The notes below the pieces were generated by a model. It was not told where the DNA came from and searched no databases. It saw only the letters and a list, made by a program, of their open reading frames with translations. Shown here one piece after another: positions 1-33,723 of a stretch of DNA of 64,000 bases (its first letter is position 1; each line of letters opens with the position of its first letter). The translations under genes and the position numbers were made by a program. The DNA comes from Setoptus koraiensis (taxonomy: Eukaryota > Animalia > Arthropoda), in assembly GCA_048013815.1 (NCBI GenBank), contig CM106585.1:16306001-16370000 (forward strand), read 5' to 3'.

Positions 1-320
1 ACTTTGCGCCGACGCCACCAAAAACAGTCTCAGTTAATTTCAGTTAAACTGGCCAGTGTGTGCTGCGGCATGCATTATGGTCAATCATTTCGGCCGGTGC
101 GATGCTCCATTTGAGTGCAAGTGTGCCCGTCATTAGGACGTCACCGTTGCGTCATCGTGCCAGCGTCTCTCAATTGGCCGGCCACTGGGCCGTTGGCCTA
201 TCGCCGTGTGACCCCGCTCGCTTGATGCGCCGCCGCCACACACCGTTGTGCGGCGCTGACTGATTGTGCGGCGCTGCTAGACAATCGCGCTCAATAATCA
301 GTCTGGATCGCAAGCGGCCA

Positions 321-401
321 ACTGGTCACCAACCGGCCAACAGGTGAACTGGTCACCAACTGGCCAACAGGTGCACTGGTCATCAACTGGCCAACAGGTG
401 A
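321..401. repeat. 3 x 27-bp tandem repeat, each unit containing CAACAGGTG
   Basis: Units ACTGGTCACCAAC(C/T)GGCCAACAGGTG(A/C) at 321, 348 and 375. Confidence 0.9.
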
Positions 402-1806
402 ATTGTGCGCAGCACCAATTACGCACTGCGCGGCCACTGCTAACTGTTGCCGTTAATGTTGCGTCATGGCTGCCACCGCGCCGGCGGTTAATGGCCCGTT
501 AGATGGCGGGCCAGATATAGCAACAGTGACGTCCCGATGCAACAATAGCGACGGCCAGATATAGTAATAGTGACGGCCAGATATAGTAATAGTGACGGCG
601 GTGGGCCCGCACTCAGACGCTCGCTGGGCGGCCGCGCAACGCGGCGCGACGCAGCCCAATGCGGCACAATGCGGCACATTGCGGCCGCCGATGAGGTCAT
701 CGTGATGCATAAACGACCATTGTATGCAAATGAGACGTCGTTGCACACAAGTTGCGCATACTGCACACGCTGGACAGATTGCGCAATGGCCGCTGTGGCC
801 CGGCGAACCCTCTAGGTGGCCGGTTGCGCAACGACCGGCCGGTGGCACAGTCACCGATGCTCCGAACGTATGCATCCGATAACGTATTTATGTATCTGAT
901 GATGGCATCATCTGATAATAATATTACACGAAAAACAAGTTTACGTAATGTGGACCATCCATATCATGCCCACCGCAGGTCGCTGTCGAATATACAGTGT
1001 CGACCGCACCGAACGGCAGCCGCATCCGGCCCGTCGGGTCGCATCGAACGGGCCGCGCGTATCGCCCTCAACGGGGCCAGCGGGCCCGCGGGCGACAGTT
1101 TTGTTTGTCGCGAGCGACGGTTGTGCTTGTCGCGAGCGACGGTTGTGCTTGTCGCGAGCGCCGCTAGGCGACCCACGGAGCGCCAAAGTCGGGCGACAGA
1201 ACGAGGCCAAGCCGGCCCGAGGACAACAAGCCGACACGCAAGTCGGCGCTGACAATTCGCAATTGTTGTGGTTGCAGTTGACACTTTTGGTGACTTTTGT
1301 TTGTGCGGCCACAACTGTCCGATATCAGGCGCTTCAGGTGTGACAACAACCACCGATGATCGGATTGAGTCGGTGGTTGTTGCGTAAGCGTCGGGCCAGT
1401 TCTCACACACACACACACACACACGCACAGCGGACAGATATCGCATGATATGATAATCGCGCATTCATTCATTTTGTGACCATGTCCAGCACAGCACAAG
1501 CGAGCCCATGTTGCACTTGTTGTTTTGGTCGCTTGTTTGCAACGGTTTGCAACGCCAAACAAACGCAACTCACCTGTCGCACGCTGCCGGTCGCATTGTC
1601 TAGACAAACATGCGCTGATTGTGTTGCTTTGTGTCGCGCCGGCCGCAGCAACTGACCGACGCCGACGCATCGAGTTGGCCGTTGTTGCGCAACGCCAGCG
1701 GCCTCGTTCGGGCACACTTTCACATCGTTGTTGCGCAACAGTAACGGCCCCATTCGGACGAGTGCCACTGCGGCCGACAATGGCACCAATATCGCCTTGT
1801 TAGCAA

Positions 1807-1812
1807 ATTGTT

Positions 1813-1846
<34 letters not shown>

Positions 1847-1920
1847 CTGTCGTTGTTGCTGCGGTTGTTGCCGTCGTTGTCGCCGTTGCCGTTGCTGTCG
1901 TTGTTGCCGTCGTTGTCGGC
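1807..1920. repeat. Degenerate GTC/GTT/GCC/GCT trinucleotide tract
   Basis: Read directly from the sequence. Confidence 0.85.
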
Positions 1921-2816
1921 AGGCAACAAGTGGCGAGCGAATTGTTTTCGTTGCTGAACGACAACATTGTTAAACAACCGAAATTCACACACACACACAC
2001 ACACGACGACGCAAAACATTTATTGGTTGGCGTGCTTGCGGCGAGCCCGTCAGCGAGCCGCAAATTTACAAGCGCAGCCAGTGACTATAAATATGTTACA
2101 TAACATTACAAATAATGGCCAGACAGCTTGCGGTCAGCAGCTCACATCGGCGGCGAGCGATACGATTTGCAAATATGGCCATATTTGCAAATATCGCCAT
2201 AGTTGCAAATATGGCCGGCATATTGCCGGCGCCAGCGGGTATTCACTGCTGCTGCCGGCGCATTATTGCTGCACTATTATTGGCGCATTAGTGCTGCACT
2301 ATTGGCGCGTTATGGCCGCATTGTTGCCGTCGGCCATTGTGTAATCTGGTGCACCGACAGCCAACAGCCAACAACCAACAGCCGCTGACCACCAACCGCC
2401 GACTGTTGCTGTCGAGCGACCGTCAGCCGCTCGAGTTACGTAATATGTTGCCAACTGTCAGTGAGTGACCGTTACCGCAACCCATTCCGGCGTGCGTCAG
2501 ACGCCGCGTCAGCGTTGGCACCGCATTGCATCAGCGTCATTGTGATCGTTGTTGTTATAGTGTGATTGCGCTTAAGCGGTTTATGTTTGTGTTTCCATGG
2601 CGAGCTAGCGCTCGCGAGCGAATTCTTTTGTGTTATCGTCGGTGTGGCACCATTCGCAGGCGCACTAATCACTGGCCGCCACAACAAACCCATTCTTTTC
2701 GGCTTTGCTGCGAGACAGACAAAACAACAGAATCCGTCCCGACAAAACGAAGCTCGGGCCGGCGCCTGGGGTGTCGGTTCGCAGCCGCCCGAGGGGCGCG
2801 AAGAGCGCGAAAATTC

Positions 2817-2902
2817 ATTTTTCAATTTTCAATTTTCCATTTTCCATTTTCCATTTTCGGTTTTTTATTTTCCATTTTCCATTTTCGGTTTTCTATTTTC
2901 GG
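2817..2902. repeat. TTTTC(A/C/G)-based pyrimidine-rich tandem repeat
   Basis: TTTTCAATTTTCAATTTTCCATTTTCC...TTTTCGG. Confidence 0.85.
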
Positions 2903-3859
2903 CTCTCTATCTTCTATCAGCGGTCTCCAGTTTCGTCTTTGTCTCGAAAAACCGATTCGCTCGGCCGATAACAAGTCGAGCCCGATAAGACGGCCCGTGG
3001 CTGCAACCGCTGGCCGGCCAATCTCACACCCGAGTGAGATATTGCGGCGCTCCGATTCGGTGAGAGTGGCCGGCCGGCGCTGTTCCCATTGAGCGCCATA
3101 TTTGCCGCTCGGGCTATATTTGGCGCTCGAGCGCCCGTTTGAGCGGTGCTCGCCGCACGCATATGCCCCATTAGTGCAAATGTGGAGCTCGGCGAGACAC
3201 TGGCGCTCACGTGAGAATTATTGGCCCAATTAAACGGAATCGCTTGACGCAAAAGTGGTCGCCCGGAGCGACCGCCATCCAAACAGTCAACAGTCCGCGC
3301 CGCACGGCCGCGACGGGCGCTTTCGGCGGCTCGTTCGCTCGGCGAGCGGCGGCTCCTTGGCGCCCGCAAGTGGCCAAGTGGCTCGCTGCGGGCCCGGCCC
3401 GAATCGAATCGAGCGGCACGCCGGCCGCGGCCGCGCCAGGCGAAGCCGCAGACGAAAGTTGTCCCGTCGCGGTCGTGACGCAACGCTGGCCGGCATTGCG
3501 TGCCGTTTCACTTGCCACTTTTCGGCGCACAACAATGTCGGCGTCGCGCCCCTATGCAACCCGCCGATATTGTTATCTCCGTTGATTATTTCCATTTCCA
3601 TTTCATTATTATATTGGCCGCTATTTTCATTATTATTTTCGTCGTTGTTCTCGCCGTGGTTATTCTCGTTATTATTTTCATTCTCATTTGGCCGGTTATT
3701 GTCCGCGTCGGTCGTCGCCGGCGTCGGTTATTGTCAGCCGGTCAGCTGAGTGTTATTGCCGCCGTTATTGGGGTCATTAGAATGCAAATGGGCAATCGCA
3801 TCGTCGTCTGTCTCTGTTCGGCGGCTCGCTCGCTTTGTTGGTGGTTCGCGCCGAACATT

Positions 3860-3968
3860 CGGATTGCGCAACCGGCGACTTTCGGATTACGCAACCGGCG
3901 ACGTTTTGATTGCGTAACCGGCGACTTTAAGATTGCGCAACCGGCGACGTTCGGATTGCGCAACCGGC
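3860..3968. repeat. 5 x 23-bp tandem repeat, each unit with a TTRCGYAA palindrome
   Basis: Cores at 3864, 3887, 3910, 3933 and 3956 (exact 23-bp period). Confidence 0.95.
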
Positions 3969-4830
3969 AGCGTGACTCGCAACTCAAACGGGCAACTTGG
4001 CTCGACGCTAGACGGTGTGTGCGCCAGTCGCAAATTGAGGCCGCCGGCTCGGCATATCAATATACGTCAACGAGTTGCACGGCGAGCAGTCGCCACTGAC
4101 AAGTTGTTTATTGAGCGCATTGGCAGATGCGCTCGCCTCGGGCCGGGCCGCTCGGACGCCGCCGAGCGGGTAACTCACGCGCCGGCGGGCCGCTGACCGG
4201 CGCACACATTGCGTTTGTGAGGCGGTGTGCAACAGGTTGCCATTAGCGGCAACGGCGGCAACTGTGGCCAATCAATGAGTAATGAGTTTTGCTGTTTTGC
4301 ATTGATTGCTCATCATGATGAATCATCATCATCATCATGTTCCATTGGCACACATTCCCGCTGCTCCGAACGACGATAATTTAAGCATCGTCGTCATGAC
4401 GCAACGCACTTTACCTGCGCTTGCTCGAGCGCTTGCTTGCTTGTGTGGCCAGTGGCCGCTCACCTGGTCAGTGGCTAGATAGTCGCAGCATTGCGCAATG
4501 CTGCGCCGGTTGCGTAATTTAGAGCCGCTCGTAAGTAAGCAACGGCATGCATCGATTAAAACATCACAAACACACAATCTCAGCCGTTCTCACACCTGGA
4601 TGCTCTTGATTAGCTTGCTCATCATCATTTTGTGTGTCAATGGTTCTCGTTGGCTGCTTACGTCACTTAAATCAGCTGGCCGGTCACAAGTGACGCAACT
4701 CCGTGAGCTCGGCCGACTGACAGCGGCCGCTTGTTGCGCAATTGTTTACCGCGGCATAACGGTACTTCACTGTGCAAACATCGCCAGTCCGGTATCGTCT
4801 CGCATACGCAGCTCACGTAGCCAGTGTGCA

Positions 4831-4902
4831 ACTCGCAACACTCACAACACTCTTAATACTCACAATACTCACAATACTCGCAATACTCACAATACCCACA
4901 AT
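4831..4902. repeat. 8 x 9-bp ACTCACAAT-type array
   Basis: Read directly from the sequence. Confidence 0.9.
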
Positions 4903-5129
4903 ACCCCAAGTGCGGCTTGCATGCACGGGGTACTGTGGGCGCAAACAAGCGGCCGACCGGTATGCTAAAATGGCAGACCGGCGATGACCGCGCGCGGCTA
5001 TTTGACGGCCATCGCGCGGTGATTCATCATCGTTAACGGTCACAATTGTTGTTTCTGGCGATGACCGTGATGAGCAGCGCCACCAAACAAGGCTCGCTTT
5101 GTTTGCTTTGCCGTGCGCCCGCCGACACT

Positions 5130-5204
5130 CGCCGAGATTCGACGAGATTCGACGAGATTCGCCGAGATTCGACGAGGTTCGCCGAGGTTCGCAGATTCGC
5201 CGAG
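5130..5204. repeat. ~7 x 10-bp CG(A/C)CGAG(A/G)TT array
   Basis: Read directly from the sequence. Confidence 0.9.
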
Positions 5205-6130
5205 TCGAGATCCGAGCTTGGCGAGCGATTCGAGCGTCTCGGCCAGACAATCTAGGTGAACGCCGGCACGAACATGTCGATATTTCATCGCCGCCCGTCT
5301 CGCTGTTCCGAAGCCGCGATTGTCTCGCCGGCCGGCGCGGACGGGCCGGCTCGTCAGTGAGACGCGGGTCGCGCCGGCGACGTTCATCGGCGGCCCCACC
5401 GGCTCGCGTATTCGGACGCGATTGATTCCTACTGATTCTGGCCCATCGTTCAGCCCATTATTGTACAGTGGCCGGCCCGGACACTCGGGCGGCTCTGGAG
5501 GGTGCATGTGCGGACCCGGCCCTCTGTCGGGCCAATTACAACCGGCCCGGTTGTAATGGGCAGTAATGGCCGATAATAAGCAATAATAAGTAACTGCGCT
5601 AATCGCCGACCATCAAGCCGTTGCATCGCGCCGTGATTGTTATCTGGAGCGCGCCGTCGAGCGTCGTGCGTCGCTCACTAATTGATGTCGACCGGTCGAC
5701 GGTTTGCATTAAAAAATGAATATAATTGATTGCGGTCCGCCACTGGCCGGCAGCGGTGCCGTCGAGCGGTGCGGCTCCCCGCTGCGAGCCAATCACATTA
5801 CGGGCACACCAATATCACACACACACACACACACACACACGCAATACACGCAATGCGGGCAATTGGCATTTGAGAGCGTCGGCCGTGCGGTGCCGGCCCG
5901 ACCGCAACAAGTGGCCGCCGTTGCGGGCCAACAAGTGAATGTTTCTCGTTTTCTCGGCTTCTCCGCTTCTCGGCGCCGCTAGCCCACTGGCCCAGTGACT
6001 CAGTGACGCACCAGCCCGCAAACTCTCCAAATCAGCTCACCGGCTGACCGGGCATCGGCCGCTCGGACGCAAACTGTTTGCGGCCGAGCAATCTGTTGCT
6101 CAGGCGAGCTGTTGCATAATAGCCACAATC

Positions 6131-6190
6131 GGCCATTATGCAACGGGCCATTATGCAACGGGCCATTATGCAACGGGCCATTGTGCATCG
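6131..6190. repeat. 4 x 15-bp GGCCATTATGCAACG array
   Basis: Three perfect units and one degenerate unit. Confidence 0.92.
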
Positions 6191-7856
6191 TCGGCCATTG
6201 TGAGACCGCTGGCAGCAGCAAGTGACCTTGGCGCAACACAACACGGCTCGTGCCGGACATTACGCGGCGTTACGTAACGCGACGTGACGCAAACAGCGAC
6301 GCGATGGTCAGTCAGAGCGGCGCAGTGATGCCAATCGCATGATTAATGTTCTCGGGCGGACGTTGCGTAATAATTGAGCGAGCAGTGCAGCACAGTGGTC
6401 AGTTGTTGCGCAATCGGGCGACGGGCAGCTCCATTATGTTGGTATTGCAATAAATATTACAACAAATATTATAATAACAGCGTAATATTAATTGTGGCTG
6501 GCAGCGCAAATGGCTCCTCGGGAACAACTCAGCTGGAATGAGCGTCAAGGTCTCGTCGGCGCAAGGTGTGTCCGACAAGCGACCAGCGCCATTGTCCCGC
6601 GGCTCCGCGAGACGCCAGTGGCCGGCCCGCAGAGCTGCAGCCTCGGAGAGAGTTCTTTTGGCCCGAGAGTTCTTTGTCGTTCGGCGTTCGCTGTCCGACG
6701 TTCGGCGTTCGACGTTCGGCGTTCGCTGTCCGATGTTCGCGCTTCGAAGCGCGGACCGCCGAACGAGAGAACGAGCGGACGAGCGGACGGGACAACGCGA
6801 CTCCTGTCACGAGAGAGCCCTCGCGAGCCGCGCCGACGCAACTGGCGGCGATAGCGAACAGGGCAACTCGCAACGCTCCCACTGACACCAATTTGCTCGC
6901 CTGGCGTTGCCTTGCAACGGCCGATCGACATTAGCCCGATGGCGCTGATTGGCATCTTCTCGGGCAGCATCTCGGGCGGCATCTCGGGCCGCTTCTTAAG
7001 CCGCTTTTCGGGCAGCTTCTGCGGTTTGCGCGCCGTCGGAGCGCTCGCCCGCCTCATCTATGCTAAATATAACACAACATGATGCAGAGATTTATTTTGT
7101 TATTAACGCGCGCATTGTTACATAACTTTGCATGGCCGCAGCGACGGTGGCGCTGCTCACACAGCGTCGGACACGGTCGCCGCGACGGCCGGCGGCCGGC
7201 CGACAGCGTCCGACGGCGGCGAACAAAGGCGAGCAGCGAATCGGCCGAATGAATGGCCGGCCAGCGTCCGACGCGTCGTGAAACGAAAGCACTATCGCTG
7301 GGGTCAGTGTCGTCGTGCCGGCCCGGCCGCCTTGCCCGCTCGTCGAGCCGCGGCCGTCAGAAGAGAACGGGCGAGAGAGTTGGCGAGCAACAATTCTTCT
7401 CGGGCGAGAGAATGCGCCAAAGAAGCGCGACAGCCGAAAAGAAGAAGCTGCCCGCAGTGGATGGCGTGCATCAGATAAAATGAAAAGTGGCTGCCAACAA
7501 GTGGCCGAGCTCACGACGTCCGCCCGTCAGTGAGCGTGAGCGGGCCGAGCGCGGCCCGTTGCGTGACCGGCCGGCGCTCGTAGCGAAGGGGTCGCCGGCG
7601 GGCTCGTTAGCGCCCGGTCGTTAGCGACAAAAGGAAGGGCGCACAGCATCGATTCGCGCCGGCTCCGATTCGCGCCCGACCGGCCGCTGCTATTTATAGC
7701 CGCATTTCGCCCGGGCATTTTGTGTTAAATTTGGCCAGCCGACAAATTGCGCACATCGGCGCGGTCATCGCGCTGCGCTTAAGCGTTGTGATGGCGCCGA
7801 TGTTGTGTAGTTGTGTCGGCGCGCCAGCGGAACCCGGGCCGGGCCGCCGCTCGCGC

Positions 7857-7911
7857 GGGACGAAAAGAAACGGGACGAAAAGAAACGGGACGGAAAGAAA
7901 CGGGACGAAAC
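7857..7911. repeat. ~4 x 15-bp GGGACGAAAAGAAAC array near the 5' end of the long dyl intron
   Basis: Units at 7857, 7872, 7887 and a partial at 7902. Confidence 0.9.
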
Positions 7912-7954
7912 CGAGAAAAAGAGAATGCAACAGAGAAATACGAAACGGACTTAC

Positions 7955-9747
7955 CTTTGCCCACTTGGATCTGCATCCAGCAGCCGACGTTGTCGCCCGC
8001 AAAGTCGGCCCGCACAATGTCCAGCATGTCGACCGGAAACGGGCGGAAGGTGACCGCCTTCTCGTACTGGTCGTGCCAGGTGCAGCGCAACTTGCGCGCC
8101 TGGTCCCACACCTCCTGCACGTGCTGGTCGTATTGTATGACGATGGTGTTCTCGAAGTACGTTCCGCTGCCCGTTTGGCCGCCCATCCCGTACAGGCCGT
8201 TTTGGGTATTGCCCTGGGTACCGCAACTGTTGATGCTAATGTCGAAATAGGCGCTCGCCTTGCCGCTCTGCGGGGTCACGTGCGAACACTGGGCCGAATT
8301 GTAGTGGCCCTTGCTGAATATGATGCCGTTGAATATTTTGTCGAATTCGATGCTCACCTTCATGAGATTCTTTTCGCACTTCACCTCCAAATTCACTATT
8401 TTCGGTATGTCGGGCGTGGGCAGGGGCCAGTTCTCTTGATTTTGGCCCGACGACGACGACGACGACGACGTTGTCAGCGCGGACGACCCGATGCCCGGCG
8501 GCGAAGCCGCGATCACCGGATGTTGGGCGCTCGAGGCGGCGCTCAGCTGGGTGCTGGAGGCGCTGTGCGCCAGATCGCTCTCAATAGAGTTAGAGTCGAG
8601 GCTTGCGTACATGGCGCTGCTGGGCTGTTGCTGGCTGTTGACCACTTGTTGTTGTTGTTGTTGTTGTTGCTGCTGTTGTTGTTGCTGTTGCTGGTTGACC
8701 ATGATGTCGGCCGGGTGCTGTTGGCGGTGTTGCGGTTGCCCGGGCGCCTGCTGCTGTTGTTGCATCATTTGGGCCTGGGGTTGTTGTTGGGCGTTGACCA
8801 TTTGCTGCTGGGCGGCCACGGCCGGGTTCGGGTAGCCGTTGGCCGCGGCGGCGGCCACTGCCGCTGCCACCGCTGCGCTGGGCCCCATGAAGGCGCCCGC
8901 GGGCAACTGGCCCAAATGGGGCCCGCCAGCGTGCTGGCCGGCGTTGTTGGGCGGCTGGGCGGCTTGGCCGAATTGGGCCAGTTGTTGTTGTTGCTGGACG
9001 ACGGGCAGCTTGTGCAGGTTTTGCATTCGGGCAGCGGCCGCGGCCATGTTGATACCGTGATGCTCCATCATTTTGGGCTGCTGCTGTTGCAGCACCCCGA
9101 AGAGCGGATTCTGTTGCTGTTGCTGTTGTTGTTGCTGTTGCGGGTTGTGGTGGTTGCTGTAGAGCGCCGGGCCGGCCTGGTTCATCATGGCCTGCATGTC
9201 GTTGGCCTGGCGCGCGCGCAATCGGTGGCGAGACAATTGGGGCAAAATTTAGTATTTTGGGGTATTTTGGGGTATTTTGGCTATTCTGGCACCGGTGGCG
9301 TCACGCGATCGCATGAGTCCGCCGGTGCCCGATAGTGGGAGCGATGGTGAGTGATCGGGAATTAAATGAAATTAAAAACTTCGGGGGGGGGGGGCAACTT
9401 ACCCGCACGGTGAAGCCCGACTTGTGCTCGGCGGCGTCCGCTTGCGACTCGGCGGCCATCAGATCGTCGCTGGAGAAGGCGTCCGCCTGATTCGACGACA
9501 TGCCCTTGTCAATGTCTGTGCCGCCCACAATGGAGGCCACATTTTGCCCGTTGTCTGAGTGTGAGTGATCGTTGGGCCCGAAGGCGCCAATTGTGGGTGT
9601 GCGGCCCACGGCGGCGATTGCAATTGTCGCCAATAGGCCCGACAATAGCAAGCTGCTGGTCAATTGGTGCTGATAATTAATTGTTGACAATCGCGCCGAT
9701 TTGTGACGCGCAAATCTCTGACGGTGGCTAGTAGTGGTTTGTGTCAT
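7955..9747 (-). CDS. dyl: ZP-domain cuticle/apical ECM protein, dusky-like (5' partial; exons 9403-9747 and 7955-9206; remaining ZP-C exons lie left of the window)
   Basis: ZP-N sequence VKCEKNLMKVSIEFDKIFNGIIFSKGHY...QEVWDQARKLRCTWHDQYEKAVTFRPFPVDMLDIVRADFAGDNVGCWMQIQVGKG matches the dusky/dusky-like family as I recall it. Phase-0 intron 9207-9402 (CGG|GTAAGT ... CGCCAG|GCC). Donor AAAG|GTAAGT at 7954. Hydrophobic leader LTSSLLLSGLLATIAIAAVG follows ATG 9747; an upstream TTG at 9966 is not preferred. Confidence 0.85.
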
Positions 9748-10036
9748 AGTTGTGAGTTTAGTTGTGTTTGCACAAGTGGCTGTGGTTGTTGTTGTTGTTG
9801 TGGTGGTGAACGGTATCAGGTATTTTTGGGTTTGGGTTTGGCGTTGTTGTGCCTGGTGCTGCTGCTGTTGTTGTTGTGTTGCTACTGCTTGCTTGCTGGT
9901 TGCGCCTCTCTCGGCCGGTGCCGTGTTGTTGCGTCGCTTCGACAGGTGATGGGATATTTCTAACATGTTGTGTCGTAGCGGCTATTGTTTGGTCGAGTAA
10001 CTTTGCTGTTGTATTTTGATTTTGATTCTTTTATAA

Positions 10037-10127
10037 AATATTGTGAAATATTGTGAAATATTATGAAATAGTATGAAATATCATGAAATATTATGAAATA
10101 TCGTGAAATATAAATATAAATATAAAG
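10037..10127. repeat. 7 x 10-bp AAATATTRTG-type array plus (AAATAT)n upstream of dyl
   Basis: Read directly from the sequence. Confidence 0.9.
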
Positions 10128-11474
10128 CTAGGTGTGAGGCTGTTCGAACTTCGACGAGAGTGGCCACTGCTGAAAATGACCGGCGATGCGATTTGATGCA
10201 AGGCGATGCGAGTTGATGCAAGGCGATGCGAGGCGATGCTCGGCGGATTGCAACGAATAATCAATGATGACACAATCTGGCTTGTCGATCTGTTTTTGGC
10301 TGCGCTGTGGCCGGGCGAATCGGTGACGGTAACGTAATTATTGGATGCACAAACATGTAAAAAAATGATGTTAGTGGTTGTCGCGGCTAATGAGAGGCGG
10401 AGATACGAGCTGACCGTTACTGTTAGCTGGGCTTGCTATGATCGCCTCGATGATGCTCGAAATGAAATATTTATTGGTGCACTGTCGACAATCTGGCCGC
10501 TGCTTGTGCTTTTGGCTTGTGTGTCTAGATTGCAGTGATAGTTACGTAAGTGAGATATCACTCGCTATCAACTTTTTGGTATCAGCTTGCCGCTGCTATC
10601 AACTTGTTTGCCTGTTTTGCTGCTTGTTTGCTGCTGCTGCTGCTGGCTCGACGATGCGCCGGTGATGCAACTGACAATGTTGTTGTGCAACAAGGTCTCG
10701 GCGAGTGGAAGCTCGGCGGTGAGCGGAGGTCGGCGCTAGTTGGTGCCGGCTTGTTGCTAATGCGATATTATAATGCGAGCGCACCGATATTGAATTGAGC
10801 GCTGTTGCTGTTGCCGTTTGCTGTTGCCGTTTGCTGAAAACTTGTTGTTGTTGCTGCTGCTGCCCCGATCGGCTAATTTGTCAAAGATCCGGCGCCCGCT
10901 CACACGATGCGATACTGACGATGCTGACGATGCGGACGGTGCTGCCGACGATGCTGCCGAGACGCTCAGGTGATGCTCAGGTGAATGGCGATGCGCAACG
11001 CTCGCTCAGGTAGTAGCGCTGCCGGCTATATTAATAATAATAATGATAATCTGACCGTTAATCAACTAGTTCATAGATGCTATGAGTGTGCTATGAGCCG
11101 AGTGTGTTGCGCAACTTGCCGCTAACAAATTCAACTTTTGGCCTCAAGTTGACTTTGACTTTGGCTCGCTTGTGCAGCTAACTGGATCTTTATCTATTTG
11201 CCACTCTTGTAACTGGCCCTGGTATTTGGCCAAACTGACGATGATGCACTTGTAATGAGCGCCGATGATGCCGCTAGTTGTGTGTGTGTGTGTGTGTGTT
11301 GCTAACTTTGAAATTCTAACACTGCGCCAATGCTTACAACTAACTGGTTAGCCGATGATGATGCAAAAGAAGTTTGCGGCTCGCTGCAGAACTGCAAATG
11401 TTAATCCAACCTGTTGCTGCTGTTGCTGTTGCGCAAGAATTGAAATAGTCCAACTTTAGTTAGTTAGTCACTTA

Positions 11475-11645
11475 GTGTGTGTGTGTGTGTGTGTGTGCGT
11501 GTGTGTGTGTGTGTGTGTGCAAATGGATTCGATGCGATGCGATCCGATTCGGCAACACCGACGACGACGACGACGACGACGACGATGATGATATTCAACA
11601 CTTATTCCACTTCTCTCTCTCTCTCTGTCTCTCTCGCTCGCTCTC
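11475..11645. repeat. Compound microsatellite (TG)n - (GAC/GAT)n - (CT)n
   Basis: Three adjacent simple repeats. Confidence 0.9.
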
Positions 11646-12863
11646 GAACTGCCCTCGCTACAGCTCACCTAAGCTTACACAAGCGCTAAGATGCTGGCGT
11701 CGAGATGCGATGATCCCGTTATGATGAGCTCACTCGATAGCTCACCTTGATAAGGGTGTTGCGTTCGCTCTCTAAAGTAAATGTTGCATGTTGCGTAATA
11801 AGCAGTTGTTTGTTATATGTAGTTGCTGTGAGGCTTTGCAGTAACTGTTCAGTGTGTGTGTGCGTTCAGTGCTGATGCTGTTGCGCAACTGCAAGCCGAC
11901 TGGCACAAGTGCACAAAAAACAAACCAAGACCATGAGCTCGTTTGAGCTGCTGCAGTTGTAGCTGTTGCTGCTGTTGTTGCCGTTGTTGTTGAGTTGCCG
12001 TTGTTGAGTTGCTGTTGCCGCTGCGTTGGCTTTCCCTGGCTCACCTGGCCGACGTTTGTTTATTAAATACAAACAACTGCCTCTAGACACACCAGCACGA
12101 TGGCCACAAGATTTGCAAGATTGGCGATGATGAGTTTGCGACGACGATGAGAGTTGCTCCGCTGCCTTCGTTGCTGTTGCTGTTGTTGCTGCTGTTGTTG
12201 TTGTTGCCGTTGCTGCTGTCGCTGTTGTTTGCGCCGGCCGATCAACGGCCAGCTCCAGCAAGCTCCAGCGAGCTCCAGCGAGCTTCGGCCAGCTTCGGCC
12301 AGCTCCGAACGGCTGCGCATAGCTGCCGACGGCCCAAACCAACGATGCCTCCCACTTTTTTATCCCTCTCCTTATTTCACTATCACTAAACTAATGGCCG
12401 TGCGCTGCATACGCAACACTACACTGCAGCGACTATAGCGGCCAGCGGACCAATGGCCCGGCAAGCCGAACAACAATGACAGGCTCAATACGCTCACCCA
12501 GTGCAACAATATACCCGGCACCGCACTCACCCGGCGGCTTACACGGCCACACTCACCCGGCGGCTTGCGCGGCCACACTCGGGCCGGCGCCGGCCACTGG
12601 ACGCTGTCGGACGCCGACTGTCTTGCCGTGGCCAGCAGCGCGGCCGACGGTGTAACTCGGTTAGGTAAACGCATGCGGCGCGGCTCGCCGCGGCCATCGG
12701 ATTTGCGCTCGCCGACGGCCGCTCGCTGCTCGCCGACGCGGTCCGACCAGCCATTGCCGAGTCGCCCTGCTCGCCCGAACGCGCCAAATGGGCATTCTCC
12801 AATGCCCATTCGCCGCCGAATGTCGCCTCTGAACGGACCTTCGAACAGACGCTCGAGCGGACC

Positions 12864-12917
12864 TTCGAAGGGGCGTTCGAAGGGGCGTTCGAGGGGGCGT
12901 TCAAAGGGGCGTTCGAC
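12864..12917. repeat. 4 x 12-bp TTCGAAGGGGCG array
   Basis: Read directly from the sequence. Confidence 0.9.
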
Positions 12918-15189
12918 GGGACGGTTGCATGGACAGTGGTCGCCGTGTGCGGCCCAAACGCAGCCGTTTATCGGCCATGGGCACACAGGTGAGTCCGTGT
13001 CCGCGCTGGCGCGCATAGACGAAATGCCTCACGTAAGCCTGTGTGTGTTACGCAAGACTCTTGCGGCAAGAGTGTATGAGTTACGTAAGACTGCATGAGT
13101 TACGCAAGAGTGTACGTGAGTTACGTAAGGCCTTACACGATTGCATGCATTGTCGGTGCATTGTAAGTGAGCCGCCGATGAGTCTGAGCCGCCTGTGTTG
13201 CCACAAGGGCGGGTATCGGCACGGCAACGGGTACCGACTCAACGGCGCTGACTCAATCGCATTGAGCTCGGCATGTTATTGGCGCCAACACGCCGAGCGT
13301 TCGCGTCGAGCCATAAATGGGACGCCCCTTCGAAAGTCGCCCGTGAGCCCGCTGCGGCCACCACCGCATAAGTGTGTGTGTGTGTGTGTAAATATACAGG
13401 TAATAATAGCCAACGGTTACATAATACACACGCAAAGCCATGAGAGTCTCATGATGAGAGAGCCTGTTGAAAAGAAACAAGTTCTCTGGGTCAGTGGTGG
13501 CCGTCAGCTGTCTCCCCGTTCGCCAATTGTGTGTCTCGTGAGCTGGTTACAGTGGCCAGTTATGCAACGCGATTCGCAAATGCGCTGCCCGGCGCCATCT
13601 AGTCGGCGCAACAAGTGGCTCGGTGGCCCGGCGAGACAGTCCGGCGAACGGTCGTCGGCCAGCAGGCAATAAACGGTGTGTGTGTGTGTTCTGTCGATCG
13701 CAGATTGTTATTGCGCCCATTTGTCCGCTGCTGTGTCTCGGCCGCTGCTCGGCGGACGCGCCGGGCGCGATGCGGGTACGGCGGACACAGCGGACGCGGC
13801 CGGGCACAGCGAGTGAAGGGGGCGACCGCGCCGCTCAGAGATGCCGACAGCGTGCAAGTGGCCGCAAGCGGCCCGCCAGACGGCCCGACGGGCCGACGGG
13901 CAGAGAAAACAAACGACGATGCCCATCAATTGCATCATTAACTGGCGCGCTGCCGTCTGTGGATTATTGTTTCTGGCCTCGGACAAGCTCGCTCGCCGTC
14001 TCGCCGCTCCGCCGCCCCGTCCGCTGGCTGGCTGCAGCGGCTCGACCGACCGAGCTCGGGCGAGCGGCGACCCGGGCGAGCGGCCGGTGCGTCCCATTAG
14101 CATCGTTTGCGAGGCATCGCTTCGAAAACAAACAATGCCGTCGATATCGGCGCATCGATGCTGCCGTGGCCAGACACGGCCGGCACAAAGCGAATGGACG
14201 CCATAAATAATATCGCAGACGATTCAATATTGTTTGCCGGCCGAAAGTGTGCCACCGCAATCGGCTGCTGTCCGCTTGCACCGGCCGCAGTGCATCGATT
14301 TGCGCCGCGCGCCACACAGCGGACAGGTGACGAAGCAGCGGTCTTGCTGACAGGCGACGCCGTTGCCACTTTGCGTCGGCATGCACACTTTGGCCCATTG
14401 CGCCTATTAGGCCCGTTATGGCAAACTGTCCTAATAAGTGATTGTGATAAAATTATCACAACAATGACTCTATTGAAATTTCCAATGGAATATTTTCAAT
14501 TTGAGAATATTATGAATTGCACACTGCAAAACGACACTGATGCGCAAACGAGACGCCTCGCCATTGTTGTCGGCGCGCCCCGGTGACCCGCCGGCCGGCG
14601 CGCCCCGTCGACCCGCCTGCCGACTCGCCCTACGAGCTGCAAACTCGGCCGAGCCGGAGGCCCCAGTTGGGGCGCAAAGTTTGCACTTGCGCATTCGGTC
14701 GCGCGCCCGGCGATAGCGAGCGGCCCGAATGCGCGTCTCGCTGGGATACGGCGAGCGGCCCGAGCCGGCAAGCTGGTCGCTTGTTGCATTGCGCAACATT
14801 TGTGTATTATCGCCGGCCGGATAATTAGTCCGATTCTAGGTCGCTAAGTGCTTCTCCTTTTTCCATTATCGCTGCCTCCATTATCACTGCCTCCGCTACG
14901 GCCGCCTCCATTGCGGCCGCTGGCCGCTCGTTGCGCCGGCCGGCCAGGCGCTCCGGCTTGCTCGTCCGGCAGCTCGCGAGCCGGCGGCTCGGCGGATAAA
15001 CGGCGATGCAGCGCTGACAATGATGATATCATGTTAACACTAATTCCCGACGCAAGCTTACAATGGCGCTGCTGGCGGCGGCGATGAAATTGTTGCCGAA
15101 ATAACAGATTTTATTATGCCTTTTTTATTGTGCTCCCGCTTGTCGGCGCGACTTGGCCGGGCGAGCGAGCGTCGGAAAAAGTCGGCAGA

Positions 15190-15270
15190 AGCCGGCGGAG
15201 CCGACGAAGCCGAAGAAGCCGACGGAGCCGAAGAAGCCGAAGAAGCCGACGGAGCCGAAGAAGCCAGAAA
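15190..15270. repeat. 9 x 9-bp AGCCGA(A/C)G(A/G) array with 27-bp higher-order period
   Basis: Read directly from the sequence. Confidence 0.9.
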
Positions 15271-15592
15271 AAGTTGCGCTCGCAGTGTGGCCGGTTTGTG
15301 TGCCCTTTTTGCCCGCTTGCACCATCTCTCTTTTTCAATTATCATTCAATTAATGCTCGCTGGCGTGTCTCGCTGCGAGCGCCTGCGCAACCCCAAATAA
15401 TCTGCCGTCCCGCCCCACTCGGGCCTGCGCCGTCCCGCCTCTGGCCTCGAGCCGGGCCGGCCCGACGAAACGAGCGGAGCGGCGCGAATTGTTTATCGCG
15501 CACCCGTCGGCATGATTGGGCCGATTGAATAATCATTCTCGCGAATCGGCGCTCGTCGGGCGCATCTTTTGCTGCGGACCGGATCGCCGATA

Positions 15593-15669
15593 GGCCGTCA
15601 ACTATCGAGCGGCCGTCAACTGTGGAGCGGCCGTCAACTGCGGAGCGGCCGTCCACTGCGGAGCGGCCG
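15593..15669. repeat. 4 x 18-bp GGCCGTCAACTGCGGAGC-type array
   Basis: Units at 15593, 15611, 15629 and 15647. Confidence 0.9.
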
Positions 15670-17680
15670 GGCCGGCAAACGGCGAGCGCGAATTATGTGA
15701 GCGCTTTTTAGAGTCGGGCTGGCGATGCATGACGCATGCGAAATGCCGGCCGGCACGATAACATTAGTGGCGACAATCAATTTGAATTTTAATCACAATT
15801 TGAGCCCCATTAGAGGCTGGCGAGCTTGTCGAGATTGACTGTTGGCGGGCTCGTCTCACGCTGCCAGTTAATGTGCTGACAAATGAATGTCGGCCCACAG
15901 ACGCTATTAATACGGCGCGCTATTAATAAATAGATCTCAACCGGACACACTCGTCTCGTTGTGTGTGTATAATCTAAACGAAACGAAAGCCATCGAACGT
16001 CACATTACGTAAGTCAAGGCGAGCTTGTGTTTACAGTGCCGCCGCCGTCTGTCTAGCGCGACCTTACGTAATGGCAAATATTAACTAAGCAACTTAAGTA
16101 ATCCAGTATCTAGTCCACTAACTGCACAATGTCATGAACAGGTGATGAGCTTGCCAAATGCGCGCTTGTGATGCTACCTGTTGATGTCGCGCCGAGCTGA
16201 CCGGTCTGGCTGCTGGCTGCTGTCTGCTGGCTGGATCATGCCACTGCAAACAGTGATCAAGCCGAGGCTATAAATGCACTTCCTAGATGGACAAGAATAA
16301 ATTGTGTTTGTGTGACACTTGTTGCCGTCGCTTGTTTGTGTGCACTTCCTCCTTATGCTAATGCAACAAACAGTTATGTAACTCCCAACATAACTGATAA
16401 ATAACAGATAAATGCTGTTATCTACGGGATAACTGGCGAGCCACAGCGGCTAACGGAACAAATGTAGACAGAACAAAGATGTATCTATTAATGGCAATGG
16501 CAGCTTTATTTATTAATGGCGTACATCTATTATCTGCTTGGGCGACGCTCGGGCCGGCGGGAAAGTACACGGCACATGTTGACAGATGATGAATTCCCCT
16601 CGTTAAATGAATTAATGCACACAAGGACGCTGCTCGGAAAACATAACGGGCGCATCGCGTAAATCACCCCGGCCACCAATGGACACACCAGACAAACGCA
16701 ACAAACATTTTGCAATGGAAACATAAGTTGCATAAGACCAAAATAAATGGCCAACGATTAATTAGATTCGAGCGCCAGTTCAAGCGGCTTGAGTTGGCCA
16801 ACCGCAGGCCAGCACTTGTTGCAACAGGTGAAATGTTGAACGAAAAATGTCAAATGTTGTTAAATGCTGAATGTTAAATGCTGAATGCGCCGGCAACCCT
16901 GTCATGTGTGCCTTACATTGTCATGTCCACTGCGCTGCCGCTGCCAAGATTACAGGTTATGTAACAGCCAACAGGATGCCGATAAATCTAAATGGAGTCA
17001 GAGACAAAAGTATCGCTTGCCAGATATCGCGGCTCTGCGAGCAGATGTGAGCAGACTGCTTGTTATTACATAAATTATCCGGTCGCTCACTCGCCATGCT
17101 CCAGTCTGATATCTCGAGTCGCAGCATCTCGAGTCGCAGCATCTGCCGGGATTGGATCACAGTCCATGGGCAGCTCGGCGACACTTTGCGCAAAGTTCGC
17201 CCGTGTATCAATTGCGGCGACAATCGCGGAGCAGACCAGTTGAAACAAGTGCCAGTCTCGTCGCAAAATGATTAATCAAAACAAGATCTTGCGCCGGAGA
17301 TTGGGCACAATATGACAAGCTCGGGCCAGCTTGCGCCCGCTGCGACAAATGCCGCGGCGGCAGTCGCAGCCATAAATCGCCCGATTATATCATGTTATTT
17401 CTGTCCGCATTGGCGATAGCAATGACAATAATAATCTCGCCCAAGTTTCCACATCGACTGATTTAATCCTGCAAATGATGGCACACAAATTCATCAGGCG
17501 CCTCGATTCATGCGATCTCCGGCGTTGTGTCACAAAAATCATCGAAACCAATCCCCTCTGCAGGCGCCCTATTCCGAATAGGCTATTCGGCCCGATTATA
17601 CCGACGGTTCGGGCCGTCGGGACCGGCCAACTGGCCAGCAACTGGTGCCCGTTTGGCGGATAACGGCGACCGGGCCCAAA

Positions 17681-29831: not shown

Positions 29832-31088
29832 ATGGGTGGAACTAGTTTCTTCAACAGATTTAGTGCTCAGAGATTATGGAAGGGTGTCACCGGAGTTTCA
29901 AGTGCCGGCAAAAGGAAGGGTCGCGGCAAAGGATCCGACAGAAAAGTTGTTATAGACTTCAATAAGGGACAACGGATAGGAGAGGGACAACGAAGAATTA
30001 AAATTCCCTATCTTAACACGCCAGCCAATCCCAGAACTATTGCCAAACCAGAAATACTTGGAGAGGACACAGAGTTCAAAGATAAATTGTTGAAAGTTCA
30101 CGAGAGGATGACTGGCTTCCGCAGACGCCGTATCCATCCAATGGACAGAGGCTGGTCAGGAAACAGAACGCCGGGAACAAAAATCGGCCCCCCAGATGAC
30201 GTAGGTGGTGTTCCGTTCACTGACTTTGAAACGATTGTTCTTCAAGCGCGTCCTTTACTCAGAATGACAGGAGCGACTGGCAGGGCGAAAAGTGTTGGAG
30301 CCTTAGTAGTGACGGGGAACGGAAACGGACTGGCAGGTTTTGCCTCAGGAAAGGGCTACGATATGAGACGTGCAATTGCAAATGCCAGAAATCGTGCAGG
30401 TCAAGCACTATTACGATTTAATTTGTACAACAATCAAACAGTTATGCACGATTTCTTTTCTCGTTACTATGATACAACAGTGTTTGTGGAGCGCAAACCT
30501 GAAGGCTATGGTGTTCACGCGCATAGAGTTATCAGAGCCATTTGTGATGTTGTAGGAATCAGGGATTTGCATGCCAAAATTGAAGGAGGCCACACGGCAA
30601 AAAGAAATGTCCTCAACATTACAAAAGCCTTCTTTTTGGGTCTAGTGAACCAGCGAACATACCAAGAGATGGCGGATGAGAAAGGTTTACACCTTGTTGA
30701 GCTCAGAGAAGAAACATTTAACTTCCCGAGAGTTTTGGCGTCACCCAGCTCGATGGCCGTCAGAACTGAGCCAAGTGTCAGGGACGAACACAGTTTAGAT
30801 TTCACATATTATATTTACAATGGAAAAATTAGGCAAGTAAAGGCTCCAATTAAGAACCCGTTCCTAGGTACACCGAGCTGGCAGAAACATTTAGACTATC
30901 AAGACTATGTAAAGAATAGAGAGACAAGTAAATTGGAATTTGCTGCAAGATATGAAGATAAGAGTGTGTTTGAGGTTTTTCCACATTTCAAGTCAACGGC
31001 TTTCAAGAACGAGGGAACAGCAAACAAAAGTGATGATGATTCTAATGAGGCGTCCGAGCAGCCAGAATCAACAGCCGAATCTAGATGA
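29832..31088 (+). CDS. MRPS5: Mitochondrial ribosomal protein S5 (uS5m), intronless
   Basis: SFF...SAQRLWKGVTGVSSAGKRKGRGK; HPMDRGWSG; S5 domain ALVVTGNGNGLAGFASGK; AICDVVGIRDLHAKIEG. Confidence 0.95.
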   Translation: MGGTSFFNRFSAQRLWKGVTGVSSAGKRKGRGKGSDRKVVIDFNKGQRIGEGQRRIKIPYLNTPANPRTIAKPEILGEDTEFKDKLLKVHERMTGFRRRRIHPMDRGWSGNRTPGTKIGPPDDVGGVPFTDFETIVLQARPLLRMTGATGRAKSVGALVVTGNGNGLAGFASGKGYDMRRAIANARNRAGQALLRFNLYNNQTVMHDFFSRYYDTTVFVERKPEGYGVHAHRVIRAICDVVGIRDLHAKIEGGHTAKRNVLNITKAFFLGLVNQRTYQEMADEKGLHLVELREETFNFPRVLASPSSMAVRTEPSVRDEHSLDFTYYIYNGKIRQVKAPIKNPFLGTPSWQKHLDYQDYVKNRETSKLEFAARYEDKSVFEVFPHFKSTAFKNEGTANKSDDDSNEASEQPESTAESR

Positions 31089-31882
31089 TGATCAATTATG
31101 TAAAGTAGTATAGTTGCCAATTAATAAAAAGTTAGCTAGTGTAGTCAACAAACAATGGTTCGTTCTACAGTGGTCAGCAAGAATGGGGGAGAGGATGAGC
31201 CCCATTTCTGGGACTACAGTTGCGCTATATCATCTGTGCGTCGTGATTTTTTCCCCCGATGTTTGTCAGTCGAATGCATTGGAAAAAGCACGTTTTCAGG
31301 GACGTTGTTGTTGCGCTTGCGCGTCAACAAACAAAAAGCCGTTGGTTGGTGCATGAAAGGCGTTACTCGTTGACACAATAATTTCGAGAAATTTGTTGGC
31401 TTCTCTAGCCGCAAGGCGCCGCTGTCAGCCATTGCAAAGGGCGCGGTAGCTCGATCCTTGTGGACTATTCATCATCTGCACGAGATTACATTCACGAACG
31501 AACCGCCATTTTGCTATATTTTCGTAATACAAGAGGCCACCTAGCGGATAAACGAAGCAAAAAATTCGTTCGTAAAGTTTGTGCCATCAAGCACATCAAG
31601 TTTTCATTGTTGTACCGATAAACCAGTTGGATCATTATCGTACTGAAACACCAATCCAATCAGGGTATACCGATTGTCACCAGAATATTGCTGCACCAAC
31701 TTAAATTGAATTTACACTTCGACCAATGACCCTTGACCAATTAACTTTTTTCGGTCGACAGGAATCATGATTGGTTATTGATAACATCCATACCGTTAGT
31801 CACTCCGCGCTTTGAACTGGACATTGAAATTCCATAAGAGAAATAACAGATTCATTATAGGAAACATTTCTTTACATTGGTG

Positions 31883-31888
31883 TCAGTT
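31883..31888 (+). promoter_or_regulatory. Initiator-like element (TCAGTT) ~50 nt upstream of the ATG at 31937
   Basis: Matches the arthropod Inr consensus TCAGTY and is positioned to start the spliced transcript described next. Confidence 0.4.
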
Positions 31889-31936
31889 CTCGAGAAAGTT
31901 ATAAACAAAAACCGATCACACAATATCGACATCCCG

Positions 31937-32704
31937 ATGGTAAGTTAATGAAGCGCATTAGTACTTTGTATTTTGTATAATTGATGTTAAACGCGTGCTG
32001 ATGGCGCCTTCTTTGAAACTTGAATTCGCACAAAAACTTTGTGAGGGGAGTATTTGTTTGATATCACTATTTATCTATATATAGATATACATATAACTAT
32101 ATATTCTGTGTCGTTTCATCATTGCATCTTTTCTTAGGATCTCAGCTTGACGTTTGCTTTAGCACTTTTACTACTACCAGTGGCATTTATACAGATTACG
32201 GATGGTGGTAGAGGCCAGACGAAGCTTAGTCAGATTGAAAAGGCGAGAGTCTTGTATAACTACGCTAGATTGGGTGAAAATTATTGTGACCTTAAAGGCC
32301 ACTACAATCACAAAGAGAGCACTGGCGCTATCAACTTTACCTGTCCATCCCATCAGTCTGTGAAGGCTTGGAAACAGAGCTTCTTGAAGTATGGGGATCT
32401 GAAAGACCGACGAGGGGGCACTAGAAATGCCAGAACTAAGATATCACCCGAATTGATTGCAGAAGTGAGAAGGCTCACCAACAATGGTACTATCCCGACA
32501 AGTGCTCGTCTCGTCGCTAAGTCTCCTTCGGTTAATGTGAGCGCTAAAACCGTCAGAAAAATAATGAAGGATCATCTCAAGTTGAGAGTCTACGTTCAGC
32601 CGCGAAGGCAACCAGTTTCATCTAGTGCACAACAACTTCCCGGCCGTCCTCGCGTCCGCGTTGCCCATTGTGAATTCCGGCCCAGAAATAGAGAAAATGT
32701 GTAA
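31937..32704 (+). CDS. Predicted spliced gene: signal-peptide-like leader fused to a Tc1/mariner-type HTH DNA-binding region (exons 31937-31939 and 32138-32704; 189 aa; no DDE/D domain)
   Basis: ATG|GTAAGT donor at 31940 and TTTTCTTAG|GAT acceptor at 32137 join in frame to give MDLSLTFALALLLLPVAFIQITDG-GRG... The downstream sequence PSHQSVKAWKQSFLKYGDLKD...ELIAEVRRL...TSARLVAK..VNVSAKTVRKIMKDHLKLRVY follows the paired-type HTH pattern of IS630-Tc1-mariner transposases. Confidence 0.65.
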
Positions 32705-32841
32705 CAAATTAGCCATGTACTCAGACCCAATCACACGAAGTTCCTCTCTATGCATGATATCCATGACGATTGCTCAATGATTGCTCCATGACGAACCGAA
32801 AAGCGCTTAAAAACAAATTTCCAAGGAGGGAAATCCTCAGC

Positions 32842-33338
32842 GTGTCACCGAGCTTTCAAATACCAGCTAAAAGAAGGGTCGCGGCATAGGATCCGACAGC
32901 AAAGTTGCGAAAGACTTCAATAAGGGACAACGGATACGAGAGGGAAAACGAAGAATTAAAATTCCCTATCTCAACAGGCCTGCTAATCCCAGAACTATTG
33001 CCAAGCCAGAAATACTCGGAGAGGATAAAGGTTTACACCTTGCTGAGCTCAGAGAAGAAACATTTAACTTTCCGAGAGTTTTGGCTTCACCCAGCTCGAC
33101 GATGGCCGTCAGAACCGAGCCAAGTGTCAGGGACGAACACAGTTTGAATTTCACACATAATATTTACAATGGAAAAATTAGGCAAGTGAAGGCTCCAAGG
33201 TGAAACCCGTTCCTAGGTACACCGAGCTGGCAGAAACGTTTAGACTATCAAGAATATGTATAGAAAAGAGAGACTAAATAAAAATGGAATTCGCTGCCAG
33301 ATATGATGATAAGAGCGTGTTTGAGGTTTTTCCACATT
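32842..33338 (+). pseudogene. Internally deleted MRPS5 pseudogene copy (5' part ~29884-30067 fused to 3' part ~30681-30989)
   Basis: About 90% identity by eye to both parent segments. In-frame junction EILGED|KGLH. Stops TAA, TGA and TAG plus a frameshift near 33275. Confidence 0.95.
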
Positions 33339-33723
33339 ACTGTTCGTTTTTTATTTTCTCACCAATGCTCTTCCGTATAAACTTTAGATGATGCCTTTTG
33401 GATTCTTTGAGACAACCACGAATGGTGCCAGAAAGGTGCAATATGTCGATGGCACAGGGATGTTGATTCATACTATTAACTAGAGGAATCGCCGCCATGA
33501 CAATACTGTGAACCCCTTTCCTTGTTGCAATAATTCCATGTCCGCTATTTTGATCGAATCTTTTCACTGAGAATGCTCTAAGTAAACAGGCTACGCCGAA
33601 ATCTCCGTACAATTGCTCCACTACATCTCGGATACTGTTACAAATGGAGCCCGGCGAAGTGCTTGCGGTTTCAGAAAGAAAACGTACACTTACGAGAACG
33701 TATCTTCGCTTAACTCTTACCAT
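33337..33723 (-). CDS. POP5: RNase P/MRP subunit POP5, intronless
   Basis: MVRVKRRYVLV...VEQLYGDFG...ILHLSGTIRGC, 128 aa. Confidence 0.92.
   Translation of the reverse strand: MVRVKRRYVLVSVRFLSETASTSPGSICNSIRDVVEQLYGDFGVACLLRAFSVKRFDQNSGHGIIATRKGVHSIVMAAIPLVNSMNQHPCAIDILHLSGTIRGCLKESKRHHLKFIRKSIGEKIKNEQ

Follow-up and report, generated by a model that had tools for sequence, protein, structure and literature searches.

It is well established that transposase DNA-binding domains have given rise to host genes, as in SETMAR, CENP-B and the Pax paired domain, and the P-element KP repressor illustrates that the DNA-binding part of a transposase alone can occupy element ends and repress transposition. 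The locus described here lies on the forward strand at positions 31883-32704 of a Setoptus koraiensis window (the whole 64-kb stretch of DNA that was analysed). We consider it probable that this locus is a real two-exon gene for a 189-residue protein consisting of a hydrophobic leader (~22 residues), a mariner-type bipartite HTH and a basic tail, and that it descends, in truncated and immobile form, from an unusual Tc1/mariner lineage that passed the leader on to it. As in SETMAR, a mariner DNA-binding module has been kept by selection after the death of the element; in SETMAR, by contrast, a SET domain is joined to a whole though crippled transposase and a hydrophobic N-terminus is lacking, whereas the window gene holds the HTH pair and the leader only. 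The parent lineage also differs from the SETMAR/Mos1/Hsmar1 group, being DD37D rather than DD34D. Truncated regulators of the KP type suggest a plausible working mode for the window protein by analogy, although those are encoded by internally deleted copies that are still mobile and the window gene is immobile and conserved between species. Domesticated transposase DNA-binding domains being already known, the version with a leader appears to be the new part: our literature search turned up no transposase or transposase-derived protein described as carrying a signal or anchor leader, and we know of no signal- or anchor-like leader on such a protein or on the intact parent transposases.

The gene model was read directly from the sequence. 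Exon 1 (31883..31939) opens with an initiator-like TCAGTT (31883-31888), at which transcription probably starts, and continues through a 5' UTR of ~52 nt to the ATG at 31937-31939, its only coding triplet. A GTAAGT donor (31940-31945) follows the ATG immediately, and the 198-nt, phase 0 intron (31940..32137) closes with TTTTCTTAG, comprising a pyrimidine tract and TTAG, the 51-nt tail before the acceptor being free of AG. Exon 2 (32138-32704, 188 codons) reads DLSLTFALALLLLPVAFIQITDGGRG... and ends with TAA at 32702-32704. The initiator, the ATG joined to its donor, the 198-nt intron ending in TTAG and the in-frame exon had all been proposed by the initial annotation, and each lies exactly where it was placed. 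Exon 2 has no ATG of its own, and an ORF listing could start its frame only at TTG; the TAG of the acceptor doubles as the in-frame stop that closes the ORF upstream in the window. Unspliced RNA read from the ATG at 31937 yields M-V-S-stop, three codons in all, so that the long ORF is expressible only through the 31939/32138 splice or a similar one. An exact-protein look-up of the window ORF from its TTG/GTG start gave no match, likely because the reference translates the start codon literally.

A protein search found a single close relative (P0001, 96% identity), which sits on an 18.9-kb Logan contig (L001) from another sample, and across the databases searched the gene occurs in just this one other species. 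In the initiator and start region, GGTCAGTT and CGATGGTAAGTT are identical in the window and L001. The intron of L001, 156 nt long, matches that of the window in position and acceptor, and the stop of L001 falls at the same codon (TAA in the window, TGA in L001). In both species a stretch without any AG, 51 nt long in the window and 110 nt in L001, precedes the acceptor, which supplies the first AG to follow it. The one-codon first exon and its intron, as originally proposed, are thus backed by an initiator, an ATG joined to GTAAGT and an acceptor that are kept in a second species. The coding exons are 567 nt long in both, with no indel in 188 codons and with 87% identity in DNA and 96% in protein. 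Outside the exon, identity is ~60-68% with many indels; the interior of the intron is poorly conserved and contains indels, and the last 60 nt of the intron reach 40% in ungapped comparison.

Differences between the two coding sequences fall at codon positions 1/2/3 in the ratio 7/4/60 (Fisher p=2e-33), and the Nei-Gojobori estimates for this one species pair are dN 0.025, dS 0.71 and dN/dS 0.035. By part, dN/dS is 0.12 in the leader (p=0.0014), 0.016 in the HTH region (codons 24-155) and 0.086 in the tail. The selection test called for by the initial annotation therefore indicates a gene kept by selection, and in this pairwise comparison purifying selection is shown to be strong on the leader, the HTH and the tail.

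The conserved unit extends beyond the exons. It spans window 31168-32731 and L001 3769-5333 (1.56 kb) and includes ~770 nt upstream of the ATG. The conserved upstream region (31168..31882), which we presume to be a promoter or regulatory region, is ~68% identical to L001 3769-4523 with near-identical blocks of 20-40 nt. Near-perfect non-coding blocks lie 300-600 nt before the start, at 31312-31350, 31360-31375, 31537-31560 and 31590-31615; one conserved block shared with L001 is TGCGCTTGCGCGT..CAAACAAAAAGCCGTTGGTT, and this at a divergence where synonymous sites are near saturation. These blocks may be regulatory sites or relics of the 5' region of the parent element. A search of 30900-33500 gave no Rfam match. 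At the other end, a short conserved 3' flank (32705..32731) forms the last part of the shared unit, the local alignment ending at window 32731, which corresponds to L001 5333.

The unit is all that the two regions have in common. In the window its neighbours are an intact intronless uS5m gene, a degraded uS5m copy, POP5 and MED16; in L001 they are a PTB protein of the IRS type and an ORF of 250 aa. Features of uS5m in the window place the source DNA within Arthropoda and no more narrowly. Because the flanking genes differ, the two loci do not correspond in position, and L001 may represent either a paralogue or a copy that has changed place. By this comparison of gene order, either the unit has moved or the region has been rearranged since the species split.

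The DNA-binding part of the protein (32231..32575) corresponds to a bipartite, paired-like HTH of the mariner type. In Pfam, HTH_32 alone matched (E=4.9e-6, 27.4 bits, under the gathering score of 33.7 bits), and the window protein gave no match to DUF4817. Searched exhaustively with phmmer, 1.84 billion cluster representatives yielded seven matches, among them P0002 (1.1e-17, 57% identity) and P0003 (2.0e-10), both of which carry DDE_3 above the cut-off. When a profile built from the family and its ordinary relatives was compared with solved structures, the best matches were to mariner-type proteins of the SETMAR/Mos1/Hsmar1 group, whose bipartite HTH fold is shared: the SETMAR DNA-binding domain (7s03) at 3.7e-7 and residues 6-112 of Mos1 at 7.6e-4. 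Ordinary transposases with DUF4817 and DDE_3, which occur in arthropods and in other animals, have a homologous HTH1-linker-HTH2 arrangement at 16-26% identity to the window protein.

The predicted structure is consistent with this assignment. The AlphaFold2 model (mean pLDDT 76.8, above 90 for most of residues 31-90) comprises an N-terminal helix (residues 2-21), two three-helix units and a disordered tail. The helices of the first unit occupy residues 32-44, 49-62 and 72-85 and those of the second residues 104-115, 123-128 and 136-146, with a basic linker between them. The best Foldseek matches of the model are Pax5, Pax6, Mos1 and Tc3, with E-values that are weak because the two halves are flexibly linked. 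The Pax paired domain (1k78 and 6pax, probability 0.97-0.98 in the structure search) and Tc3 (1u78, probability 0.82) likewise consist of two three-helix units and a basic linker; for Pax and Tc3 the E-values of 0.03-0.2, TM-scores of 0.3-0.47 and identities of 13-17% denote a likeness of fold and not membership. The bipartite transposase HTH that the initial annotation had recognised is thereby borne out by HTH_32, by relatives bearing DDE_3, by the SETMAR and Mos1 profile matches and by the 3+3 helix model.

Beyond the second HTH unit the protein ends in a basic, probably disordered tail (32585..32704, including the stop; pLDDT <50 for residues 175-188), in which an R-V-x-V/F-A motif is kept. 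In the alignment with relatives this tail corresponds to the R-L/V-x-F-A motif that follows HTH2, and the ORF stops a little ahead of where the first catalytic Asp would lie. No DDE-like sequence was found in the ORF or in the remainder of the 64-kb window. The search for terminal inverted repeats, made at about 30900-33000 and around the L001 unit, gave only short pairs at chance level. The absence of the catalytic domain and of convincing terminal repeats had been noted from the start; the former holds for the ORF and the 64-kb window, the latter for the flanks. The unit itself would thus not be an autonomous transposon, having neither a catalytic domain nor terminal inverted repeats flanked by a TA duplication. 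Descent from Tc1/mariner is supported by the HTH and by homology to DDE_3 proteins, the catalytic domain and the element ends having been lost.

The origin of the leader was examined by comparison with full-length relatives. Three of these carry a leader, namely the L002 ORF, P0003 and P0037 (on L005), and all three retain a complete DD37D triad, with 37 residues separating its second Asp from its third. P0003 is a protein of 486 aa that starts MDSYKIIVLLATIFLFAEG and continues with the HTH pair and an intact catalytic core (DDE_3). L002 has one open frame that starts straight behind a splice acceptor, and here too, as at the window locus, the TAG of the acceptor forms an in-frame stop; the frame reads NILSVLALVIILWCSTFQSGRGANKLT... 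(NILSVLALVIILWCSTF...) and runs through the HTH pair and DDE_3 into a long C-terminal extension. P0037, found with a profile made from P0003 and the L002 ORF, has the same layout of acceptor and leader. The full-length transposases of the leader clade are ~490-570 aa long (DD37D, with the extra C-terminal extension), and the clade stands well apart from other proteins, its profile scores being 760-1065 bits vs at most 209 bits for all else. Ordinary relatives with DUF4817 and DDE_3 (~350 aa) begin at HTH1, without a leader or hydrophobic N-terminus and without the C-terminal extension; their catalytic core is 31-39% identical to that of the full-length leader clade, and the window protein in turn differs from them in lacking the DDE domain as well.

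The full-length relatives look like transposons. In L002, positions 356-382 and 3193-3219, the latter at the contig end, form a perfect inverted repeat of 27 nt, which reads TAAAGGGTGGAAGCG.... At the DNA level L002 and L005 share ~75% identity, and each contig breaks off at a homologous ...CCCTTTA, as expected where an assembly meets the end of a repeated element. L002 and L005 thus look to lie in elements with apparent terminal repeats that are apparently mobile, as judged from short assembled contigs. The terminal repeat sequence of L002 is absent from the window, and a search of the window turned up no target sites. Within 1.2 kb upstream of the L002 acceptor no ATG followed by GT was found as a candidate exon 1 of the full-length relatives, and the window upstream region has no non-coding similarity to the 5' regions of L002 and L005.

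Other members of the family were also seen. L002 356-3219 and L005 1-2043 are transposon-like (~2.9 kb); in each, an intron immediately precedes the leader and the encoded transposase measures ~520-570 aa or more; their proteins combine leader, HTH, DD37D and an acidic, Cys-containing C-terminal extension that ordinary relatives are missing. L003 (P0004, positions 459-935), a frameshifted copy from the same sample as L001, is a paralogue in the species of L001 with the leader MIKILLTSVVIIISLGYVLC; its ATG and leader are in one exon, its frame is disrupted between the two HTH units and it has probably decayed. L004 is a decayed metagenome fragment broken by stop codons.

Because the leader is shared with full-length DD37D relatives, in two of which it stands directly behind a splice acceptor, the comparison indicates that it is ancestral to the truncation: the leader belongs to the transposon lineage and was inherited rather than captured. 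The initial annotation had proposed the opposite, that a host gene supplied the signal peptide by exon capture for secretion of the product, which might be a salivary effector acting on plant-cell DNA. There is something to be said for this model, since the leader has the length and shape of a signal peptide with a T-D-G/G site in agreement with the (-3,-1) rule, those of P0003 and L003 appear still closer to classical signal peptides, the basic tail could serve as a nuclear-localisation signal, and the gene is under strong selection. Capture is contradicted by the presence of the leader, at the same place and behind the acceptor in L002 and L005, in full-length, catalytically intact transposases of apparently mobile elements, which are the only close relatives; secretion sits poorly with an acidic n-region and with basic residues right after the hydrophobic core, both untypical of a signal peptide. 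We regard capture of a host signal peptide followed by secretion as unlikely. What stands of the earlier interpretation is a transposase derivative, under selection, with a translated leader; what falls is the capture of that leader from a host gene.

The leader itself (residues 2-24, 32138..32206, DLSLTFALALLLLPVAFIQITDG) resembles a signal peptide or a signal anchor in its hydrophobicity and in comparison with L001. Over its first 24 codons the window and L001 differ at positions 1/2/3 by 1/2/8, the only replacements being S/N, L/I and A/V. Its apolar run of 17 residues has a mean Kyte-Doolittle value of 2.54, and by crude rules the QITDG/G site (T-x-G/G) fits the (-3,-1) rule. Over a 19-residue window the hydrophobicity is 2.33, which is compatible with a membrane anchor too, and the charges favour a cytoplasmic C-terminal side. 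An uncleaved N-terminal anchor, leaving the HTH part exposed to cytoplasm or nucleus, would suit the leader as well: its n-region (MD) is acidic, its apolar stretch is long at 17-19 residues, and basic residues come directly after that stretch. Across the family the leaders have apolar runs of 12-19 residues (mean Kyte-Doolittle 2.2-3.1) and a very short n-region, and most fit the (-3,-1) rule. Conserved N-glycosylation sequons (NGT/NGS and NVS/NLT) were considered as a sign of passage through the ER and rejected, the second sequon being present in ordinary nuclear transposases as well.

Another explanation is that the functional product has no leader, an in-frame acceptor in exon 2 giving a nuclear protein that starts near HTH1, with the hydrophobic stretch a by-product of pyrimidine-rich sequence or confined to a minor isoform. 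Of the in-frame AGs in exon 2, those at 32218 and 32224 are conserved in L001 and would give M+TKLSQIEKA... or M+LSQIEKA..., which is exactly where ordinary relatives begin, and a transposase needs access to nuclear DNA. The nearest alternative, at 32194, is not conserved in L001, and in both species the first AG after the AG-free zone is the acceptor of the leader. The predominance of third-position differences in the leader, with conservative replacements only, argues that it is read as protein, and six divergent family members keep an open, hydrophobic frame there. As the main product, a leaderless protein seems unlikely to us, slightly more so than capture; as a minor isoform, it could arise through the conserved AGs at 32218 and 32224. 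As for what an inherited leader might do, a cleaved signal peptide (with a luminal or secreted product) and another role, or a mostly leaderless isoform, seem about equally possible, and an uncleaved N-terminal anchor with the HTH cytoplasmic or nuclear slightly less so, none of the three being probable taken singly.

The parent proteins look like working transposases, which would need access to DNA, and we therefore do not take secretion as given. A bolder version, in which the transposase of a gall- or rust-mite transposon lineage came to enter the secretory pathway and its HTH-only descendant is secreted in saliva and binds nuclear DNA of plant cells, strikes us as improbable, somewhat more so than either capture or a leaderless product. 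The notion of a neutrally decaying transposon fragment with a gene structure arisen by chance, an outcome that the initial annotation had itself raised and that could appeal to the adjoining degraded uS5m duplicate in a rearranged spot and to decayed family copies elsewhere (L003 with its frameshift, L004 with its stop codons), is scarcely credible given the low dN/dS at a dS that also rules out a very recent transfer of L001, the lack of indels, the shared position of the stop codon, and a promoter, start and splice signals that are kept in L001 while the intron and flanks diverge.

On the preferred reading of an inherited leader, the window gene would be a truncated, immobilised member of the transposon lineage that has kept its leader. 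Its protein would bind specific DNA through the retained HTH pair, the targets probably being sites related to the ends of elements of the parent family, and may act as a regulator, either as a repressor of related elements or as a host factor; the leader would send it to the endoplasmic reticulum. If the leader does direct proteins to the ER, then a transposon lineage may control or relocate its own enzyme by means of secretory or nuclear-envelope membranes, or alternatively the mite may secrete a DNA-binding protein. The gene would in addition provide a clean case of domestication by truncation, the promoter, the intron and the leader all having been inherited from the element.

RNA data bear on the locus in a limited way. 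Three poly(A)/oligo-dT RNA runs filed under the label of a species that carries the locus have zero reads on 31100-33400, a result uninformative about transcription and splicing. The runs that cover the region well are DNA-like only, and exon 2 is absent from the RNA contigs of all indexed runs. One possibly-RNA run contains a single 237-nt contig (31676-31912) that is identical to the window, lies in the promoter and 5' UTR and ends 25 nt short of the ATG; either DNA contamination or a transcript of the upstream region may account for it.

Two further features of the window may be recorded. Directly after the gene, at 32839-33338, lies a degraded partial copy of uS5m, 83-94% identical to its parent gene at 29832-31088; it is missing some 49 nt from the start of the CDS as well as an internal segment of 602 nt, and it abuts the POP5 stop codon. 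The candidate poly(A) signals for the transposase-derived gene are found only farther downstream of the shared unit, within this copy (ATTAAA at 32955 and AATAAA at 33277), so that the degraded uS5m sequence may supply its 3' UTR and poly(A) signal (AATAAA 33277). On a larger scale, the G+C content of the window falls sharply from ~57-60% to ~38-43% near 16-17 kb (1-16000 vs 16001-64000), with a dip to 47% at 10-12 kb.
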